This document shows, in pieces, positions 907 to 28,360 of a stretch of DNA of 32,000 bases (position 1 is the first letter of the stretch; each line of letters begins with the position of its first letter). The position numbers and the translations under genes are program-made. Origin of the DNA: Wallemia ichthyophaga EXF-994. Taxonomy: Eukaryota > Fungi > Basidiomycota. The stretch lies in assembly GCF_000400465.1 (NCBI RefSeq), contig NW_008806274.1:480244-512243 (forward strand), given 5' to 3'. The notes beneath the pieces were generated by a model. It searched no databases. It saw nothing but the letters and a program-made list of their open reading frames with translations, and had not been told where the DNA came from.

Positions 907-3900
907 CTAAGAACTTTTCTTGAACAAGCCCATGAACTTGCCAAAGGCCATCTGCACCATAATAGTAGGACTGAAAAACTTGACCTTGGTCAACCAGTAA
1001 AGGCCATAGCAAAGCGCGAGATTGCTAAAGAATGTGTATAAACTGAATATACCGAAGTAGCCCCATGGCCAACCTTCACCTTGGTAGACATGTATCTGCG
1101 AAAGGAAGGAGGATGAGTCTGACATAGGACAGTATTGGCAAGCAGTGGTTGCCGCAGGGTTCGCGAGATATCCAGGTGAGGATTGCGCGAATGAGCCGGC
1201 ATAGGCTTCACAAGTTTGACCAGGTGGTGGATTGAAAGTCGCCATTTCACTTTCAACACACCTGACGGTGGTGTCGTGAGTTGTAGCGCCTGCGTTACGT
1301 TAGGATTTTACTGAGTAATCAACTGCCAACACTTACCAATCATACCGTCGAGGAAGTACGTGAGAGGGTTGATGTAGTAAAGAGTGTATCTCCAGATAAC
1401 TGGAATATTGCCGTATTGAATGATGATACCGTTGATCAAGTTGAGGACGACAAGGTGGAATGGCATTGAGTTGGCGACGAAATGTGGTGAAGGAGCGGAG
1501 GCACAGAGCCAAACAGCCCACCATGAAACGAAAATCATGAACTCGATAGTCATCAATAGGCACAGCGCTGGATCAGCTCCAGTTCTAATGCCACTATCAG
1601 GTGTGTAGGAGAAACCAACTGGCCAGTACCAAACAACCCAATAAACTACCGCATTCAGCAAAGCATAGGGTAATTCAGATATCAAGAACGCTGTCATCCA
1701 CGCCTGCCACGAATAAATCTTTGAAGGGTTCTCTCTGGCCATAAATAAGCCCCAAGAAGTATAATATTTTGGTAATGTTGCATTGAGGATCGCTGGAGGC
1801 AACATAACGATAAGGAAAGCACTTTCGGCAAAATTAGCACTAATAGAGATAATGATTTCTTATACTTACCTGAACATGCGTTGCTGGAGTTCTTGTTGTG
1901 AATTACCGATTTTGAAGAAAGTGAAACCATTGAAGAGAGCGACGATGAATGTGACGAACAATTTCCCATATCCGTAGGCCGCATCTCTCCAGTAATTTCT
2001 CATTGAACGTTGGGTGAGTTGCCATACTTGAACCGACATTGGTTGTGAAAAAGTCCTAGTCATGGCTCTAGTCAGCTCTCTTGGTTTCTGCGACTTCTCG
2101 GTATTGATTCTGTCAACCTCCTCTCTGATAGAAGCGCAGTTCTTCGAATGGCGGTAGAGATCAGCAAAGTCAACCTTGTTTCCGTGAGCGTCACGACCAT
2201 ACGCGATCATCTCAATCGCATACTCAGCAACGTTCTCGTTGTCGTGACATGGGCGCGCACCGACGCTTTTGAAGTAATCGACTATCGTGTTTCCGTTGTG
2301 GCCAACCGGTCCTTGATACACTACGTTACCACCTGGAGCGAGCAAGAGGAGTCGATCGAAGAATTCGGTGAAGAGCATACTTGAAGGTTGATGAATAGTA
2401 CACAGAATTGCTTGGCCAGCACGTGCAAGCTTCTCCAAGAAACGTCCGATTGAGTATGCCGATTGCGAATCAAGACCAGAAGTTGGCTCATCGAGGAAGA
2501 GAAGTACGTCTGGCTTGGCTGCCAATTCAACAGCAATAGTGACTCTCTTACGTTGCTCAACTGATAAACCTGCCTCGGGTGTACCCACAATCGCGTCTTC
2601 GAGATCTCTTAACTCAAGCAAGTCCATAATCTGTTCGACGTAATCGATGACTTCTTGACGTGGTGTTTCGCGTGGCTGTCTAAGAATTGCGGAGAATTCT
2701 ATCGACTCTCTAACTGTGGCGTATGCATCGTGCAAGTCACCTTGTTGAACATAACCAGTACCTCTTTGGAATGAGTTCAGTTCAAGAGGTTTACCGTCGA
2801 TAAGCATGTCACCAGAAACAACACCCATTGCCATTCTTTGAGAGAGTGTGTTGAGGAGAGTGGTTTTACCCGCACCAGATGCACCCATCAAAGCGGTGAT
2901 TGTACCAGGCTTGACGAATCCGGTTATATTGTTGAGTAGCTTTCTGTCGCCACCAGGGGTAGACACAGTGTAAGAGACGTCCTTGAATGTGAAATCAGCT
3001 TCAGATGGTTTGATTGAACCTGGTGTAACTTCCGTCACAGGAGCACCACCCTTCTCATCTGTTGAGCGAGCTGTTGGTCCAGTTTCAACATCGCCAACCA
3101 TAGCCTTCTCAGTTTCTTTTGCCTTAGCCTTACCCTTCTCGGTCTTAGCGAAGACGGTAACACCACCACCATTTCCTGAGAAGTCGAAAATCTCACTGAA
3201 GAGAGCAGTTGCCAATAGGTAACCAATCAGATAAGCCATAACGTAACCGAAGTTAGGCCAAACGTGCGAGAAACTATAGCCGAAAGCAGTATTGATATAG
3301 TTGTCACCAGGAATAGTCAAGCTACCGGGAACGGAGCCTTGGAAAGCGCATGTTTGGTAGGCTACTTGTGCACCTGCAATGTTTGGAACAACAGATCCTG
3401 GAGCGCATGACAAAGTCATACCGTGGAATTCGTTAGCCATGGCAGCTTCGAAAGCAAATGGAAGTGGGTTAATGTAACTGATCCACTTAAACCACTCTGG
3501 CATATCAGTACGTGGAATAACATAACCAACGAAGACAACAGCAATGTTGAGCGCACAGACTGAAAATCTGATGGCTTTAAGACATTGTTAGTATCATCGT
3601 CTGTCATTTTGACAAATACTCACCTTCATTGAACGTTGGACTAAGGGCTGCAACGGCACGGTAGAATTGAGTCAACGACATGGCAGTAATGAAGACGAAG
3701 AGGTAGTATATGAAAAATTGACCAGCTGTGTACTGAAGTGATGCCAAGAAGTAGACGATAATTGACATCAAAGTGACACACCCGAACAAAATTGGGATAT
3801 CAACGATAGCTCTAGCAAAAACGACTGCTGATGGGCGATAAAAGGCAAATTCCCTTTGCCTTTGGATGATTACTCGTCCACTGACAGCATCGAAGAGCTC

Positions 3901-5605
3901 CGGCAATTGAAGCCAACCAATAAATAATATCGAAAAGAACAGAATACCACCGCGAGAGAATGCTCCACTAGAGCTTTGAGGTTCACCATAGAACATTGAC
4001 GCGACGACGAATGAAACGACCAGAATTGTAACGAATTTAGTAACATAACCATCAAGTTGACCAATTTGTAACTGAATTTGACGAATAACGCAGTAGTAGA
4101 TTTGCTCAAAGTACGAAACAGTGTATGGAGAGCTCTTAGCCATACGCCTCTTCTTTTCCTCGCGAACAGAGTCTTTGAAAATTCCCAGATCCCTATGGTC
4201 AGAGGAAAATGCTTGATCAGCAGCGGCAAGTGCTGCTTGGTAGTAGTGAGAAGATTTGTAAGCTTGTTCAAGGTCTTCAGTTGTACGAGGAGCACGGCCT
4301 TCCCAGCCTTCCTTGTATGTACGCTCGTGAAGATCAGTGATACCTGTCAGGAAATCCGCAGATGTTTGACGTGGTGGCTTGTAGAAACCAAGACTTTGGA
4401 AGTAAGCACAAGCCTCGTTGGCTGGACCATAGAAAATACAACGACCGTCATCGATCAAGCAAACCTTGTCGAAAAGTTCGTAAATACCTTCACCGGCTTG
4501 GTAGAGCGTTGCAATTGATGTACCACCAGTGATATCGGTAATGATTCTCAAACTTCTAACATAATCGACCGCGGTAGAAGCATCCAAACCACGAGTGGAG
4601 TTGTCCCAACACATGACAGAAGCACGAGTTGCGAGTGTTTCGGCAATGGAGACACGCTTACGCTCACCACCTGAGACACCTCTCACCATGTCGTTACCAA
4701 CGACCGTGTTTGCGGTGTGCTCTATACCGAACATCTTGAGAAGAGCTTCAAGAACGTATTCAACAAACTGCATTCTGGCCATTCCTTGAGGTCTAACACG
4801 AGGAACTTTTTCACGCAAAGCAAATGCAAGTGTTTGAGCAACGGTGAGTGTAGGGAAGTGAATGTCTTCCTCAGTGTTCATAACAACTTCACCACGGTAC
4901 TTGTGCTTGACCTCCTTAGGAGTCAATCCACCATAGTCGACATCACCGTGTACGCCGACGTAACCTCCTCTCTTGTTGGCGAGTGCTTTGAGGAATGTAG
5001 TGCAACCAGAGCCAGGCTTTCCAAGCACAAGCATCATTTCGTTGCCAAGGGCACCCGTAAAATCGTCAACGAGGTTGCGTACAGGTGGTTTTCTGCCAAT
5101 TTTCAGTTGGGGGATGTAGCGGGTAACGAATTCGTAGGCGTCAGGACCAAAGGTAGACATAACAGCCTCTGGGAAGGTTTTGACAAATGTAGAGCCGCTT
5201 CCAGCACCCTTGACCTGTTATAATGTGAGAAATGATCACGGACCCATATATACTGACTCACCGTCAAATGCCTCCAGGAGACACCAAGATGTGGCTTGTG
5301 GGTTTTACCAGCATCCTGGAAACGCTCTCTAGCGCCCTTGAGTGATGCGTCAAGGAGGGTGATTTGTAAGCAAAGTGATTACATACAGTGATGAAAGCTT
5401 GCAAGTCGAACTCGTCCTCGTCTCCCTTGACGGTGGCGTCCGACACAGACTTACGCTGCTGGTCTGATGATTGTTTTGATGATTGCTTTGAATCCTGCTG
5501 TTCTTTGCTGAACTGCCGGGACAATCTTCTGAAGATCTCCTTGGAATCATCAACGTTAACTTCGTTGGGAGATCCCCAACTAGCTTCGTTGCCTTCTTTA
5601 GACAT
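907..5605 (-). CDS. Full-length PDR-family (fungal ABCG) ABC transporter, NBD-TMD-NBD-TMD, 1485 aa, 6 exons
   Basis: Exons 5605-5387, 5336-5262, 5214-3624, 3574-1870, 1821-1337, 1289-907 sum to 4458 nt, joined by GT-AG introns of 47-50 nt. NBD1 has GKPGSGCTT (PDR-type Cys Walker A), VSGGERKRVSIAE and CWDNSTRGLD. NBD2 has GASGAGKTTLL, LSVEQRKRVTI and FLDEPTSGLD. PDR_CDR-like extracellular loop NEFHG...C. Confidence 0.96.
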
Positions 5606-16832: not shown

Positions 16833-19678
16833 TTAGAGTTCAACTTGTGGATGAACGAGGTATGTGACTTGGTCATCAGTGGATGAGGATGGGTCTTGAC
16901 TCTCCGTATCGCGATCAGCACTACCACGCAGCTCGAGCAAATATTGATCCTGGAGGATTAGTTAGGAAATAAATTTAGTCAAGCATCTACACCTACCTTG
17001 ACCAACTTCTTCAAGACCTTTGCCATTAGAGCCTGTTCAGCCTCGAGTTGTTCAATCGAGTCTATTTCCTCCTCCTTTGATTCAATGTATGACTGTATTA
17101 TCTCATCCTTTGTGACACCAGAACCGGTTGTGTTCTCTACTGTGAGAAGGTGCTGCACGACAAGTGACATGAGTGACATATACTTGTCGTATGTGATAGT
17201 AAGTTTGGTTTTCTCAGCTGTTGGTTGAGGTGTATTTACGCCGCCCTCAGAAGCTGGAGGTGCAGATGACGAAGGCTGGACTGATGAAGTTGGAATTTGG
17301 AGATTGGGGTCGGAGGAAGATGTTATGTCTTGGGTAACATTATCCATAGGCTCAGTTGGTTGTTGTTCGTCTTCATCATCCAATCCTACATCATCCTGCT
17401 CGACGTGAATGATAGATTGACGGAGTAAAGAGTAAGCCTCCTTAACATATTGTGGAAGGATTTCGTTTGAGCAGTTAGCGCGTGCTATTGCTTCTGATAA
17501 TCTGATCATGGATTCCAGCTGTCTGACTGTGATTCTGTAGCTATTTCTACCAATACCCTGTGCATCATCTTGTCTCAGTATCCTGTATTTCTCAACCAGT
17601 AAATCGGAAGCTTCCACTGTCATTCTTGGTTGGAATGTCCTACTGTATCTGATAAATCTTTGCAGCTGCTCAGTGTTAAATTCAGGCTCGAGCGCTTGAT
17701 CTCTGAATCTGTGAATATTGACAATGTGTCTTGCGAGCATATCATCGACGCTCTCATTGCACTCGTCCAAAACAACGAAGAAAAGATCGAATCTACTCAT
17801 GATTGGTGCAGACATTGCGACGTTCTGTCTGAGCGTTGCTTTACGATTGTAGCGTCCACCGATTGGATTGGCTGCTGCTAAGATTGATGTTCTAGCATTG
17901 AGCGTAGCTTGTAAACCGGCTTTTGCAATAGAAAGTGTTTGTTGTTCCATAGCTTCGTGGATTGCAACTTGGTCTGCTATATCCATCTTATCAAATTCAT
18001 CAATCGCACAGATACCATTGTCTGCCAACATGAGTGCTCCAGCTTCGATTGTAAATTCGCCAGTCTCCTCATCTTTGACCACTGCAGCTGTTAAACCAGC
18101 AGCTGAGGATGCTTTACCGGATGTATAAACTGCTCTTGGAAGGAAAGACGTGACATACTTCAAGAATTGAGATTTGGATGTAGATGGATCACCGACAACA
18201 CAAATGTTGATATCTCCTCTCAAGTGAATACCCTCGTGAGTGCGCTTGTGTACACCACCCATTAGCTGTAACAACAATCCCTTCTTGACAATATCGTGTC
18301 CAAATACAGTTGGTGCTATACTCTTCACTAGACGGTGGTAGATGTTGTCGGTATTAACCATTGCTCGAAGTTCTTCGATTTCTTGTTGCGTTAAGCTTCT
18401 GAGGAAGGTATCTTGATCTTCTTCCTCCTCATAATCGGCCCTGACGTTGGTAGCAGAAGATCTACCATCTGCCGACTGAACCATGCAAGCCAAATAAGCA
18501 GTCTTGTATTGCAAATCGCGCACACCGAGCGCCTTTAAGCCCGTAACACCCTGATTATCAGTTCGACCGCCTGAGTTTTCTCTCATTAACTCAGTGTTTA
18601 CACCAGGTATACCCAATTGACTGACATCCGGTACGACGATGAAAGTACCTGTGAAAGTGCACTTGTCTCCAGCCTTTGCCTTTTCAACCGTTTCACCACG
18701 AAGAATGACATCCAAAGATCTTGGCATCGAACCGGTCGGAATTTCGTTTGCATTCTCTTGTATACGGACTTTCTGCCAGTCTGAGAACTTTGACTGTTCA
18801 ATTATAAGTCTCCAAGCGTTTCTGTTGTTGCACGTTGGATTTGGACACATGCTTGGCTCTGTGAATTTGAATTGCTGTTCTATATCGTGCATTACAACAC
18901 CGCATTCTTCACAAGCGAAGCAGCCGTTGACAAGTTCAGGCCTGACTTCTGAAGTACGCGTGACTGTACCGCCAACACTCATCAATGTACCGATCTTGTC
19001 TGTTCTTAGGTCTCTGATGCCACTAACGATTGGAAGATCGTAGAAAGCGATTTGGAATTCCCTTATGATATATGAGCTGGCAGATTGTGTGGCTGTGACA
19101 GTTTGGGCGTTGGAATAGAGATAACCTGGTTCGTATTTGTGTACCAAGTTTTGTACGGCGCGTTTCAAGAAAGGCAAGAATCTATAGTACTGATCTGTGA
19201 CGGCCTTTGCTAAGATATCTTCACGTTCAAGTAGGTGAGAGAATGATACGTATAGCGTTGTAAAGTTGTATTCTCTCATTCCGTGTATCTGCTCGACGTA
19301 GAACTTTGATTCCGCCTCAGCTTGCATTCCATCTACGCCAGGCGTAGCAGCGAGATCAACAACTTCAGTGTATGACTCTAAGAAATTCTCAAAGCTCTCC
19401 ATGACCTTTTCTCCAGTTGCATCTTTGACTTTTGGTACTTCAGAGCTGCAGCAGTGTGAGATGAGATTTAAAGACATCTACGACACCCACGGATCTTGTG
19501 GATTGCGCTTTGCTCTTCTGCGTGCGTTTGATTCTTCACCCGCCTCATCATCTTCGAGATTATGATCCTGGATCGACATATCGTTTATGGGACGCGCTGG
19601 AGGGGAGCTTTGCCTCTGTGCGCCAACATCGGAGGTTGGATCTGGTAGTGGACTGGATGGTCCAAGTGGCGTGCTCAT
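16833..19678 (-). CDS. MCM6: DNA replication licensing factor Mcm6, 917 aa, 3 exons
   Basis: Exons 19678-19491, 19445-16997, 16949-16833. Zn finger CEECG...CPNPTC, Walker A GDPSTSKSQ (Mcm6-type), ICAIDEFDKM, arginine finger MSRFDL, C-terminal winged-helix region ending YLVHPQ. Confidence 0.97.
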
Positions 19679-25916: not shown

Positions 25917-27236
25917 TGTTGTGGTATCTGTGAGAGAGGCGTTAACTGAGCTATAAATAGATGGCACTTGAAAATCCTATGGTTATTATTAGCTGTGTTA
26001 GAGGTACTGGGTCATGGGCTCTTTCGGTGTTCTGACTGTCAACTGGTCGATCAGTTTTCTTAATCTGCATTTCAAAGCATATCTTGGCATAAGTTGATGT
26101 GCGAGTGCGAGTGCTTGTGCTGCCAAAAGACACGACGCCTTTCTACTCTCAAACTTCGACGCATTAGACGTGCCAGAAAATTACTTCAACCCAAGTGGGG
26201 TAAAAGTTGGTGAGGTTGAGTGATGAGGTGGCTGTAAGGTGGAAGTACTTAGAGAAACTCATTTATCGCGTTTTTATACATAATTATTATGATGCTCGAG
26301 GCACAGCCTGGCATGAGTTTATTCAACAACAACGGTATATGATATCTAATCAAATTCTTAAAGTTGTATCGAGCCATGCCAATAGGGTCAGAGAATTGTA
26401 TTGCAGCTTATGCTCTGATTCCCGTCACTGGGCCCTCTGATCTCCAATTGAGTGGTCGTGCATAGCAAGCTGAAGAAAGGAAGGGCAAGAACAAAACAAA
26501 TTCAAGGTTGGAAATAATCAGTGCTTCAACTCGCGGCACGCCCAACCTCAAATCCCCGATTTCCTTCCAATCCGCAACGAATCATCGTTAGACGTGTTAT
26601 GTGGATTGGTAAAATTGTCTTGAATTATTCCTATCTATTTCAATATCCAAAGTATTTTTCTGCAAGAAATGATGATGATGATAAAATCTGAATATATTGT
26701 GAAGACGATAAATGTTATAAACTGCGTCCATCAATACTTCATAAAGCATGGGGAGTCAAAGGGGGGTTGCTGAATTTACTGAAAGTTTTTCTTAAATAGC
26801 GTCGTAATTTGTAAATTTATGGTGGTTCTCAATTACATTGAAACACCGGTTCTGCGAGATGATGAAGTTTTGATATTATTTACGCGCAATTTCTGACTTA
26901 TCAGCAATTCTGTAAACGTCTTGATCTTTGTGAGGTGAAACTGCACACAAAGAGCAAGGCGCTGAGATTAATAAAAGAATTAAGTCTAAGATGTATCAAA
27001 AGAAAAAGTAGTCGTTTAAATAGTTTAGAATTCTAGGTTTTATTCCCATTGTCTCGTTATCTTCATTGTCCTCGTGCATAATCATGCATAATCTTCATTG
27101 TTCTTTATTCTCATTGTTCTCATAGCGACCATGATGTCATGTTACCTGTTCCTGCATCTTGCCCGCTTTATTACCTACGAAGGTAGGGGCACATGCTTAT
27201 AACTTCAATAGTACGACTGGTACAACTTGCTAGTTC

Positions 27237-27316
27237 ATGATGAGGTCCCAGGTTCGATCCCTGGTATCTGCATAGACCAGCAGATATAGCTCAGTGGTAG
27301 TAGCGCATCACTAGTA
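27237..27316 (+). tRNA. Circularly permuted tRNA-Thr(AGT) gene: 3' half 27237-27272, 7-nt linker 27273-27279, 5' half 27280-27316
   Basis: The re-joined sequence GCAGATA TA GCTC AGTGGTAG TAGC G CATCA CTAGTAA TGATG AGGTC CCAGG TTCGATC CCTGG TATCTGC A is a 73-nt cloverleaf. It has a perfect 7-bp acceptor stem, 5-bp anticodon stem and 5-bp T stem, C32-U33, anticodon AGT, A37, the Thr identity pairs G1:C72 and C2:G71, A box TAGCTCAGTGG and B box GGTTCGATCCC. No complementary half exists in the normal order nearby. Confidence 0.9.
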
Positions 27317-27325
27317 ATAAATTCA

Positions 27326-27338
27326 TTTTTTGTTTTTT
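27326..27338 (+). terminator. RNA polymerase III terminator (T6-G-T6)
   Basis: TTTTTTGTTTTTT begins 9 nt after the end of the tRNA 5' half. Confidence 0.8.
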
Positions 27339-27648
27339 GCTGCCTTTTATTAATTAGGCCGATGTCATGACACATCTTGAGTGTAGTATCGAGTAGAGTT
27401 TTGGTTAACTTAATTTTTACGCGTTGCTTCAATCATTTGCCTGGAAGGCGGGTTGCTTTACAAAATTAAATGATGATGCTCTATGAGATTACCACGGATA
27501 TAAGTCTAGGCAGCACGCCAGACCAATCGGATGAAAAGTTACTCAACCAAGTAGCATTAACATCACGCTTTTAGACGTGCAGAAAATCCAGCGAAGCTGC
27601 ATATGTATATTTATACAATAAAAAAGTGAGCCAAGTGCACAGACAAGT

Positions 27649-28360
27649 TTACTCGTCGTCCTCTTCAGCCTCACCGTCACCGCCTTCAGCAGCAGCAGAG
27701 GCACGGGCGCGCTTACGCTTAACGCGACCAGGGCGAGCGCCACCGTATGGAGAGGTTTGAGAGAAGTCAATGTGCTTTTGGGAGTCGAGTCTGTATAGAA
27801 ATCAATAAACTATCGAGTAAAAGAAAAGGCGTAATACTCACCTCACAGTGAACGAAGGGACGTTGACGATCTGCTTACCAACGCGGATGTGACGTTGAAC
27901 AATGAGCACACGAGCGTGGTGGATCGACTTGGCAAGACCGCTCTTGAAGACCTGAGTCTGAAGACGACGTTCCAAGAAATCTTCAATCTTGAGAGCCAAT
28001 ACGTAATCGAGACGCCTGCACGAGGAGAACCGTTAATACGTTTATTCGTGACAGTGGACTTTCTCTTGAAGGGTTTAATGCCACTCACATTCTTGATTCG
28101 TCAAGTACACCAATACGCACAAGACGTCTGATCAATGCGTTACCTTCGAAAAGACGCTTTGGTTCCTTCTCATCGAGCTTGAGGAGCTCACGGGCAGCTC
28201 TACGGATCTTTGACAAGGTGAAAGCGATACGCCAGATTTCACGCTTGTTACGGAGACCGTATTCACCAGCGAGCTTTAACTCAGCGTCCAAACGGGCTGA
28301 TTCGAATGGACGACGTGGGACCTTGTAAGTCTTGCTGTGATTTACTGGCGCACGTGGCAT
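27649..28360 (-). CDS. RPS9: 40S ribosomal protein S9 (uS4), 195 aa, 3 coding exons
   Basis: Exons 28360-28089, 28015-27842, 27790-27649, with 73 and 51 nt introns. [82 protein letters not shown]. Confidence 0.98.

Follow-up and report, generated by a model that had tools for sequence, protein, structure and literature searches.

Permuted tRNA genes have so far been described in a few unicellular algae, in a nucleomorph, and in one archaeon (PMC3978253; 2026 review PMC13578239), and all 34 of the 34 published cases belong either to algae or to the one archaeon. Such genes have been linked to unusual TATA-dependent, TFIIIC-independent transcription and to splicing endonucleases of broad specificity. 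The type II permuted genes, which have the 37/38 junction, are known from Ostreococcus and Micromonas, from the nucleomorph of Bigelowiella natans, and from Cyanidioschyzon merolae (Soma et al. 2007; Maruyama et al. 2010; PMC3978253). The locus described here comes from Wallemia ichthyophaga (Basidiomycota), and it would be the first permuted tRNA gene outside algae and archaea, as well as the first one in fungi.

The locus was analyzed within a 32-kb window, which is the whole stretch of DNA under study, and all positions below are those of this window. The + strand from 27237 to 27316 contains a circularly permuted tRNA-Thr(AGT), in which the two halves are present in swapped order on the same strand, separated by a 7-nt linker and followed by two T6 runs (Table 1). 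In the native gene order no tRNA was recognized by ARAGORN or Rfam. The un-permuted join of 27280–27316 with 27237–27272 was recognized by ARAGORN as a 73-nt tRNA-Thr(agt), with the anticodon AGT at 27313–15 within the loop CTAGTA. The complete cloverleaf was rebuilt from both halves, and 20 of 20 stem pairs are formed in it, both in W. ichthyophaga and in Wallemia mellicola. The D arm is irregular, with an additional T in its 3′ strand (...GTAGC). The true A box is located downstream of the B box, so that the two boxes are in inverted order. The permuted arrangement is identical in 10 independent assemblies of W. ichthyophaga strains, and therefore it is not an assembly artefact.

Table 1. 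Features of the permuted tRNA-Thr locus, in window coordinates
Feature	Position	Strand	Evidence or remark
Leader of the presumed Pol III transcript	27200..27236	+	Conserved part of the upstream flank
A-box-like motif TAGTACGACTGG in the leader	27209..27220	+	42 nt upstream of the B box; putative promoter element
Leader segment TTGCTAG	27227..27233	+	Complementary to CTAGTAA (27311-17: C32-A37 and the first trailer base)
TTC, last three leader bases	27234..27236	+	With A38, unpaired 4-nt bulge holding the presumed 3′ cut site 27236/27237
tRNA-Thr(AGT) 3′ half, A38 to A73	27237..27272	+	ARAGORN, un-permuted; W. mellicola BLAST match begins exactly at 27237
Parts of the 3′ half, anticodon side			Anticodon-stem 3′ strand TGATG, variable loop AGGTC
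Parts of the 3′ half, acceptor side			T arm CCAGG-TTCGATC-CCTGG, acceptor 3′ strand TATCTGC, discriminator A
B box GGTTCGATCCC (T arm)	27251..27261	+	Sole window match pairing with an A box in the scan
Intervening linker TAGACCA	27273..27279	+	Closes the acceptor stem
tRNA-Thr(AGT) 5′ half, G1 to A37	27280..27316	+	ARAGORN; W. mellicola BLAST match stops exactly at 27316
Parts of the 5′ half			Acceptor 5′ strand GCAGATA, T8 A9, D arm, anticodon-stem 5′ strand CATCA, loop CTAGTA
True A box TAGCTCAGTGGT of the 5′ half	27287..27298	+	Sole strict A-box match on the + strand of the window
Trailer ATAAATTCA	27317..27325	+	Presumed 5′ cut site 27316/27317
Two T6 runs, Pol III terminator-like	27326..27338 (27326-31 and 27333-38)	+	

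In its layout the Wallemia locus is similar to the type II algal genes, because the two halves share one strand with the 3′ half upstream, the junction falls between 37 and 38, a terminator T-stretch follows the 5′ half and none is present within the linker, the encoded 3′ end lacks CCA, the leader and the trailer can pair beside the anticodon stem, and an origin by tandem duplication is plausible. The intervening sequence is also short, as in the published permuted genes (7 nt in W. ichthyophaga versus a range of 1–74 nt; PMC3978253). On the other hand, the host is a basidiomycete, and neither Wallemia species has a proper hBH/BHB motif with 3-nt bulges. For the algal genes, TATA-like promoters that lie upstream and do not depend on TFIIIC are assumed, while the Wallemia leader has an A-box-like motif with canonical spacing to the B box. 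In comparison with the type II genes, the circular intermediate and the mature tRNA of Wallemia are predicted. The locus also shares features with intron-containing eukaryotic pre-tRNAs (PMC10485636), including the interruption at 37/38, the predicted pairing of the anticodon loop with a non-tRNA sequence stacked on the anticodon stem, a potential pair of C32 with a G a few bases before the 3′ cut, and, in W. ichthyophaga, the presumed location of the 3′ cut in a bulge. It differs from them in that its "intron" is open, with the trailer as the 5′ part and the leader as the 3′ part, and in that the bulge of W. ichthyophaga has 4 nt and the G is at −4, while W. mellicola has the G at −3 and a favored fold with no bulge. 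The break in the anticodon loop, rejoined via flanking complementarity, is reminiscent of the split tRNA genes of Nanoarchaeum equitans, and the likely precursor, two tRNA copies a few nucleotides apart, resembles the tandem tRNA–tRNA dimers of yeasts. In contrast to those split genes and dimers, the Wallemia halves are on one transcript in swapped order, and they are neither separate loci nor two complete genes.

The comparison with W. mellicola provides evidence that the gene is functional. The gene order in W. ichthyophaga is RPS9, the tRNA, and then the Anoctamin gene, with the locus between these two opposite-strand genes, while in W. mellicola RPS9 is followed by THOC2, which marks a synteny break. 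No tRNA was found downstream of RPS9 in W. hederae (L003) or in W. mellicola (L004–L009). The RPS9 side is rearranged, and the W. mellicola ortholog was reached only from the MCM6 side, where the first loci (L001 and L002) end before the tRNA or are without it. The ortholog adjoins the same conserved 75-nt element as the W. ichthyophaga gene. In W. hederae (L001 and L003) no copy was detected by BLAST, motif scan, or a covariance model in the sequence covered, which extends to 844 bp before the end of the contig. The BLAST match of W. mellicola covers exactly 27237–27316 with 84% identity, beginning at A38 and stopping at A37, and the flanks of the gene are unalignable between the two species. 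The W. mellicola locus has the same order of 3′ half, linker, and 5′ half, and it also gives a 73-nt tRNA-Thr(agt) by ARAGORN. The linker is TAGACCA throughout W. ichthyophaga and CACA or CAC (3–4 nt), depending on the strain, in W. mellicola, so that between species neither its length nor its sequence is kept. All 20 of the 20 cloverleaf stem pairs are retained in every sequence, with none broken; three pairs (29-41, 4-69, and 5-68) are altered on both sides and one is altered on one side. When the partners were slid by 1–3 columns as a control, only 25%–53% were paired. The loop CTAGTA with A38, the discriminator A73, and the odd D arm are identical in the two species, and the B box is kept in W. 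mellicola as GGTTCGATTCC. These data indicate that the cloverleaf is maintained by selection via compensatory changes between the halves. Because the ortholog holds all 20 pairs, three of them via double changes, the gene appears to be alive, in agreement with the original prediction, which had argued against a dead fragment.

The variation among W. ichthyophaga strains points in the same direction. Only two variants were found across strains in the block 27200–27320, while the flanks are variant-dense, and 27218–27320 has one variant versus 20 variable positions in the adjoining 138 nt. The only variant of the 5′ half, 27288 A>G in a single strain, exchanges a purine for a purine at position 9. 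In the leader (27200–27236) the sole variant among the 10 strains is 27217 C>T, while the 32 nt upstream of it (27168–27199) hold nine variable positions. In the trailer, 27317–27320 are invariant, and 27321, 27324, and 27325 vary among strains. The binomial P value was 0.02 for the interval named a priori in the original prediction, and the population-level constraint is moderately significant, with P values of 0.01–0.06 by the background chosen.

Taken together, 27200–27338 is probably a functional circularly permuted nuclear tRNA-Thr(AGU) gene, which would be older than the split between W. ichthyophaga and W. mellicola. In wider searches no match was found by the metagenome scans, either for the permuted pattern or for the 3′ 20-mer; the scan of prokaryote genomes gave one chance match only, inside a bacterial coding region; and the literature search for the tRNA sequence itself gave no match. 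The flanks matched no ribozyme and no other RNA family of Rfam, even at permissive thresholds.

The leader and the downstream flank were compared with the elements expected of Pol III transcription. The leader motif TAGTACGACTGG fits the relaxed A-box pattern TRGYNNRRYN(0-1)GG, which has three matches on the + strand of the 32-kb window, one of them being the true A box at 27287. In the W. mellicola leader, TAGCCCAGCGG at −38 fits the strict A-box pattern, and the distance to the B box there is 52 nt. The frequency of A-box motifs is about 0.03–0.13 per kb. The presence of leader A-box-like motifs at the canonical B-box distance in both species suggests ordinary TFIIIC-driven transcription of the permuted gene. 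The sequence TATAA at 27198–27202 was also considered as a promoter; this candidate is weakened by A27199G in one strain and by the fact that a start directed by the A box would fall on TATAA. Runs of T6 or longer occur 12 times on the + strand in 32 kb, and a random position has such a run no more than 25 nt away with a probability of 0.009. The first T run of the locus varies by strain (T8, or T3), and the T6 at 27333–38 is invariant; in W. mellicola the corresponding runs are T5, at +11 and +20. The leaders of the two species cannot be aligned to each other. The W. mellicola leader, however, aligns to positions 2–19 of its own 5′ half (P = 0.026), and the leader may have arisen by decay of the 5′ half of an ancestral tRNA copy that lay upstream. 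No 3′-half remnant was detectable in the trailer.

The leader can also pair with the anticodon loop, and the original prediction was that leader and trailer together form a bulge–helix–bulge (BHB) at the 37/38 junction. Its base positions proved exact. In this structure CTAG of the leader (27230–27233) pairs with CTAG of the anticodon loop (27311–27314) in a 4-bp central helix, which is flanked by a 3-nt bulge (U36 A37|A, 27315–17) and a 4-nt bulge (UUC|A38, 27234–37) and closed by an outer helix of UAA (27318–20) with UUG (27227–29). A continuous 7-bp helix had been named as an alternative fold, and with the cloverleaf enforced it is this helix that is the optimum (−29.6 kcal/mol), while the BHB conformer (−23.6 kcal/mol) is 6.0 kcal/mol worse and its outer helix has an ensemble probability of 0. 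The ensemble probability of the 7-bp helix is about 0.5 with short leaders; in unconstrained MFE folds with a long leader neither the cloverleaf nor the leader helix appears. The complementarity of TTGCTAG and CTAGTAA exceeds chance (P about 0.005–0.03): a contiguous complementary run of at least 7 between the 15-nt leader and C32..+9 was found for 3.0% of random 15-mers of the window, and the duplex energy of −6.7 kcal/mol was matched by 0.5% of them. However, CTAG is palindromic, which confounds complementarity with homology, and it is just as possible that the CTAGT of the leader (P = 0.003 for its occurrence inside a 10-nt leader) descends from a copy of the anticodon loop that has decayed.

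The comparison between species separates what is shared from what is particular to W. ichthyophaga. The segment TTGCTAG is invariant in the 10 W. ichthyophaga strains, and because of this there is no covariation of the helix within the species. The leader CTAG, for which conservation in orthologous loci had been expected, is absent in W. mellicola, where the leader ends with ...CACATGCT|A38 and is without the bulge bases (TGCT[AGTTC]ATG versus TGCTATG). Opposite positions 32–35, the W. mellicola bases at −6 to −3 would give C-G, U.U, A.A, and G-C instead of a central helix. The G proposed to pair with C32 is present in W. ichthyophaga, but at −4 and not at the canonical −3. The 4-nt bulge is indeed non-canonical, as had been noted, and the strict hBHBh′ form, in which two 3-nt bulges are each cut behind their second base and a central 4-bp helix lies between flanking helices of at least 2 bp, is not found, since W. 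ichthyophaga has only one 3-nt bulge and no stable or conserved outer helix, even though it does have both the CTAG/CTAG central helix and the anticodon stem. The helices predicted for W. mellicola are different ones, between leader and trailer and between leader and anticodon loop. The distal leader/trailer helix there has −15.1 kcal/mol (P = 0.002), while the leader helix of W. ichthyophaga is proximal (P = 0.005). The G of W. mellicola is at the canonical position, and the canonical A-I conformer is 8 kcal/mol above the optimum. Hence, the pairing differs between the species in sequence, register, and geometry. The reading of the flanks as a split intron holds insofar as the leaders of both species can pair with the anticodon loop or the trailer, while the particular BHB is unsupported. 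The position of the junction at 37/38 is supported by the first trailer base of W. mellicola, which is T, because a cut at 38/39 would there yield U38 and not the conserved A38. A distal inverted repeat of TTTATTAC (27167–74) and GTAATAAA (27314–21) was rejected for W. ichthyophaga, because common variants at 27168 and 27321 break its pairing and are uncompensated.

The literal form of the original prediction, that a near-strict BHB of leader and trailer is the motif recognized by the endonuclease in W. ichthyophaga, is thus unlikely. Its register is exact for 37/38, with the central helix on 32–35 and the cuts 2 nt beyond the helix; the last invariant trailer base, 27320, is also the last base of the outer helix; and the algal permuted junctions accept relaxed BHB forms (PMC3978253). 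These points are outweighed by the folding energies, by the size of one bulge, by the inability of W. mellicola to form the BHB, and by the fact that eukaryal TSEN depends mainly on the mature domain and the proximal A-I pair (PMC10485636).

It could also be considered that the locus encodes a tRNA-like non-coding Pol III RNA that is never made into a tRNA, as is the bacterial Y RNA-like YrlA (RF02553), a permuted tRNA mimic. The order of the T arm, a closed acceptor-like hairpin, and the D arm upon a stem of the 5′ and 3′ regions is the same, the predicted precursors have their ends paired as a stem, and compensatory changes would be expected here as well. The YrlA model is the top Rfam match at both loci (for W. 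mellicola 35.3 bits with an E value near 1e-5, for W. ichthyophaga 20.3 bits), but both scores are far under the Rfam gathering score of 69, and the match rests on generic tRNA arms. Unlike in YrlA, the Wallemia segments assemble into a whole tRNA whose 7-nt anticodon loop is intact, in a eukaryotic host and with a Pol III-type terminator. The split loop CUAGUA|A is identical in both species although its pairing partner in the leader has changed, which suggests constraint on the loop itself, that is on decoding, and not on the stem. Moreover, the anticodon AGU, G1-C72, C2-G71, and A73 suit a eukaryotic Thr tRNA, and no TROVE/Ro domain is among the entries listed of the published W. ichthyophaga Pfam table. 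Such an RNA therefore seems quite improbable.

The possibility of a dead relic, left by tandem duplication or rearrangement of a tRNA-Thr gene, with the leader CTAG as the leftover of an upstream anticodon loop that is complementary only through palindromy, is very unlikely. The leader sequence CTAGTTCA resembles the loop CTAGTAA (P = 0.003), the locus is at a synteny break with an irregular D arm, and the metagenome and prokaryote collections contain no supporting matches. However, the ortholog has three double compensatory changes and no stem-breaking change between unalignable flanks, the D-arm irregularity is common to both species, and the terminator is kept despite sequence turnover. Duplication may well have been the origin of the gene, which is apparently not dead. 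Expression of only the downstream part, with TFIIIC on the true A box and a start in the linker giving a 5′-half-like RNA of ∼55 nt, or a role of the site as a chromatin boundary, bound by TFIIIC, that separates RPS9 from the Anoctamin gene, would fit the true A box followed by a terminator, the perfect B box, and the location between opposite-strand genes, but is just as improbable, because it leaves unexplained the covariation of the halves in the acceptor and anticodon stems and the conservation of the entire 3′ half and of the leader.

For a functional permuted tRNA gene the following maturation can be proposed. Two proteins with the tRNA_int_endo domain are among the entries listed for W. 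ichthyophaga (Zajc et al. 2013, Table S1). Pol III would start about 10 nt upstream of the fossil A box in the leader, which probably descends from the 5′ half of an ancestral tRNA copy that lay upstream after a tandem duplication, and would transcribe through both halves as far as the T-run. The body would adopt the tRNA fold, with the linker closing the acceptor stem, and the leader would pair with the anticodon loop like an anticodon–intron helix, in W. ichthyophaga by 7 bp and a 4-nt bulge with the 3′ cut site. The Sen endonuclease, placed mainly by the mature domain, would cleave after A37 and before A38, and a Trl1-type ligase would join these two bases into a circular intermediate, from which the linker would then be removed by RNase P and tRNase Z, after which CCA would be added and A34 deaminated to inosine. 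We infer this processing by Sen, Trl1, RNase P, and tRNase Z by analogy with known pathways. In budding yeast, splicing and end-processing occur in separate compartments, so that the route via a circular intermediate would need extra RNA traffic.

It is a more tentative and rather doubtful proposal that Wallemia obtains its tRNA-Thr(AGU) from the permuted gene alone and that this gene is transcribed by the ordinary TFIIIC route via the fossil leader A box. If it were the sole source, the decoding of ACU and ACC would depend on endonuclease cleavage, circular ligation, and re-opening by RNase P and tRNase Z, and if the fossil A box also served as proposed, this would be a previously undescribed survival route for a permuted tRNA gene in a TFIIIC-dependent eukaryote. 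The two Wallemia species provide a natural experiment, in which leader and trailer were rebuilt around a tRNA body that stayed fixed, and which bears directly on what the eukaryal endonuclease needs at 37/38. A conserved permuted tRNA of a basidiomycete would show maturation in vivo by the opisthokont Sen/Trl1 machinery and would show that functional fungal tRNA genes are silently missed by standard finders; it would also open this pathway to the well-characterized fungal enzymes and to yeast genetics.

[quoted passage not shown] In the native order no tRNA was found by ARAGORN and no match by Rfam at gathering thresholds; when the halves were re-joined, ARAGORN identified a 73-nt tRNA-Thr(agt) in which the acceptor stem has 7 bp, the anticodon and T stems have 5 bp each and the D stem has 3 bp with either a C13·U22 mismatch or a bulged U. 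The permuted order was present in 10 W. ichthyophaga strains, each assembled independently, which excludes an assembly artefact.

Features of the permuted tRNA-Thr locus, its W. mellicola ortholog and neighboring genes
Feature	Position	Strand	Description
PDR-type ABC transporter gene	1866-5160	-	intron-split, upstream
MCM6, 832-aa ORF	16979-19477	-	100% identity to a W. ichthyophaga protein; next-best matches W. hederae 93%, W. mellicola 92%
3′ half, positions 38-73	27237-27272	+	read from sequence
Linker	27273-27279	+	TAGACCA, read from sequence
5′ half, positions 1-37	27280-27316	+	read from sequence
T6 runs	27326-31, 27333-38	+	read from sequence
Long ORF, 433 aa	28907-30208	-	Pro-, Gln-, Ser-rich; no Pfam match
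Variant C>T	27217		pyrimidine to pyrimidine, inside A-box-like motif
Variant A>G	27288		tRNA position 9
W. mellicola 3′ half			A-TGTTG-AGGTC-CCAGG-TTCGATT-CCTGG-TAGATGC-A
W. mellicola linker			CACA; CAC in two strains
W. mellicola 5′ half			GCATCTG-TA-GCTC-AGCGGTAG-TAGC-G-CAACA-CTAGTA
W. mellicola trailer			TTGGATGATC directly after 5′ half, then T5 run

At the loci searched in W. hederae and W. mellicola no tRNA was found 3′ of RPS9, because that side is rearranged. A 75-nt element located 490 nt 5′ of the tRNA (26673-26746), which matched the extreme start of one W. mellicola contig, was used as a synteny anchor for locating the tRNA, and longer contigs from other W. mellicola strains were found via the MCM6 cluster. 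There, a match to 27237-27316 with 84% identity adjoins the element and is limited exactly by A38 at its start and A37 at its end; un-permuted, it also gave tRNA-Thr(agt). In a five-sequence alignment 20 of 20 stem pairs were standard in each sequence, while sliding the partners by 1-3 columns left only 25-53% paired. Both sides of pairs 29-41, 4-69 and 5-68 were changed between the species, and pair 7-66 showed a one-sided change from A-U to G·U. Of the three compensated pairs two lie in the acceptor stem, as does the one-sided change. This stem joins the upstream 3′ half with the downstream 5′ half, so both halves evolve together as a single molecule. No difference between the species was seen in the anticodon loop, A38, A73 or the irregular D arm. 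Scanning 362 kb, including two W. hederae loci, with a covariance model made from these sequences detected no additional copy.

Synteny breaks at the tRNA (25970-28360 compared with W. mellicola loci L004 and L022): W. ichthyophaga has RPS9, tRNA and Anoctamin in that order, while in W. mellicola THOC2 follows RPS9 and the tRNA is located separately, on the side of MCM6, and W. hederae has another arrangement with an extra gene 5′ of Anoctamin. Within intergenic DNA that otherwise cannot be aligned, the 75-nt element (26665-26750, + strand; L022 1471-1543, - strand) shows 88% identity between W. ichthyophaga and W. mellicola. It includes a 21-nt stretch that is the same in both (AACTGCGTCCATCAATACTTC), the C-box-like motif ATGATGA and, internally, CTGA. 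Rfam gave only weak matches to C/D snoRNAs (15-20 bits), and the element is a candidate snoRNA. Among W. mellicola strains an indel of ~260 bp lies between the tRNA and this element (L022 ~911-1471 versus L023 ~1175-1470), and several assemblies (L002, L024, L031-L034) terminate ≤1-2 kb from this region. A "tRNA-Asp(atc)" with a 1.4-1.7 kb intron called by the intron mode of ARAGORN (L022 875-2653, L023 1139-2652, L024 1110-2623) is spurious, because it merges a portion of the permuted tRNA with sequence far away; it exemplifies how standard finders mishandle permuted loci.

The 34 permuted tRNA genes reviewed previously come from six algae and one archaeon, with linkers of 1-74 nt, T-stretches downstream and, in green algae, mostly a 37/38 junction (PMC3978253). 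Algal lineages are still the only ones named in a 2026 review (PMC13578239), and our literature search on permuted tRNA and fungi found no fungal case. The Wallemia gene fits the structural definition of the published genes, and its sequence makes it a further member of this known kind in an unexpected lineage. The main functional rival is a YrlA-like RNA. The best Rfam match at both loci was YrlA, a bacterial mimic of tRNA whose connectivity is permuted in the same way (20.3 and 35.3 bits; gathering score 69). This match confirms the topology, but the YrlA-like reading is disfavored because the split anticodon loop is invariant although its pairing partner changed.

The original prediction held that the leader (5′ of A38, 27200-27236) and the trailer (3′ of A37, from 27317) form a bulge–helix–bulge (BHB) with a 4-bp CTAG/CTAG central helix. 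Each base cited for it lies where claimed and its register is correct for a junction at 37/38; one bulge, however, contains 4 nt, which places the G paired with C32 at -4 from the 3′ splice site instead of the canonical -3 (PMC10485636). Leader bases 27227-33 (TTGCTAG) are complementary to 27311-17 (CTAGTAA); a run this long occurs in 3%, and a duplex this stable (-6.7 kcal/mol) in 0.5%, of random genomic 15-mers. Since CTAG is a palindrome and leader CTAGTTCA also resembles a decayed anticodon loop (P=0.003), the complementarity could be inherited rather than a product of selection. Unconstrained folding of 27190-27331 recovered the T and acceptor hairpins alone. For a transcript begun at 27220-27227, a continuous 7-bp helix had an ensemble probability of ~0.5 and the proposed outer UAA/UUG helix of 0. 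When the four cloverleaf stems were enforced (27198-27331), the optimum was the cloverleaf with the 7-bp helix (-29.6 kcal/mol), as compared with -23.6 kcal/mol for the BHB conformer.

The leader CTAG, expected to be conserved in orthologs, is absent in W. mellicola, where the leader ends in AATTTCACATGCT before A38 and positions 32-35 would face -6 to -3 as C-G, U·U, A·A and G-C. TGCT(A), complementary to U33-A37, occurs in both leaders, and five extra bases in W. ichthyophaga (TGCT[AGTTC]ATG versus TGCTATG) explain its 4-nt bulge. With the cloverleaf enforced, three structures were predicted in W. mellicola: two small leader hairpins, pairing of U33 to U(+1) with the final leader bases and A38, and pairing of trailer +1 to +10 with the leader 5′ end (GAUCAUCCGG, -52 to -43). 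This distal helix (-15.1 kcal/mol, P=0.002 in L022; -14.0 kcal/mol, P=0.004 in L031) was weaker in two further haplotypes, which carry uncompensated changes. A canonical conformer (C32:G at -3, 3-nt bulge) is possible at a cost of 8 kcal/mol. These models suggest that both species can clamp the ends of the precursor close to the junction, each with its own nucleotides and geometry. Such differing clamps disagree with fixed-BHB recognition and agree with a eukaryal endonuclease that would measure from the mature domain and tolerate a varied anticodon–intron helix (PMC10485636). Two tRNA_int_endo proteins are listed for W. ichthyophaga in the published Pfam table (Zajc et al. 2013, Table S1). 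The idea behind the BHB survives in altered form: the view of a living gene with intron-like flanks at the 37/38 junction stands, while the specific BHB lacks support or is wrong. A perfect 8-nt inverted repeat (27167-27174, TTTATTAC; 27314-27321, GTAATAAA), which could pair the far-upstream leader with G35 to +5, is broken without compensation by common variants at 27168 and 27321 and is probably a chance occurrence in AT-rich sequence.

Among the ten W. ichthyophaga strains 28 positions vary in 27030-27660, with two in the block 27200-27320, nine in 27168-27199 and five in 27321-27330. For 27227-27320, the interval of the original prediction, the binomial P(≤1 variant) was 0.02 with the intergenic background as reference and 0.06 with all 631 nt. 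The first T-run is T6, T8 or T3 depending on haplotype (27321-27331: reference ATTCATTTTTT; one lineage CTTTTTTTTAT, with T8 beginning 5 nt past A37; another ATTCATTTA), while T6 at 27333-38 is invariant. Only 12 runs of T6 or longer occur on the + strand of the 32 kb, and the chance of one ≤25 nt downstream of a random position is 0.009. Short tandem repeats (TGCATAATCA ×1.9, TCATTGTTC ×3.4) occupy 27030-27130, where most W. ichthyophaga short-read assemblies break (contig ends 27028, 27049-27076), not at the tRNA.

In the permuted order the true B box (27251) comes before the true A box (27287), an arrangement expected to misplace TFIIIB in fungi. The leaders of both species contain an A-box-like motif, a strict match in W. 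mellicola (TAGCCCAGCGG at -38) and TAGTACGACTGG at 27209-20 in W. ichthyophaga, departing from the consensus only at A14. They lie 52 nt (W. mellicola) and 42 nt (W. ichthyophaga) 5′ of the B box, a spacing normal for tRNA genes, and such motifs occur at ~0.03-0.13 per kb. In W. mellicola the leader also aligns to the gene's own 5′ half at positions 2-19 (P=0.026), and we infer that an ancestral upstream copy may have left its 5′ half, now decayed, as the leader; tandem duplication is the proposed origin of permuted tRNA genes (PMC3978253). The leader A box could still direct TFIIIC, and transcription would then start near 27197-27201, at the beginning of the conserved block; the TATAA at 27198-27202 offers a weaker promoter candidate. 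A possible fossil A box in the leader would account for the transcription of the permuted gene.
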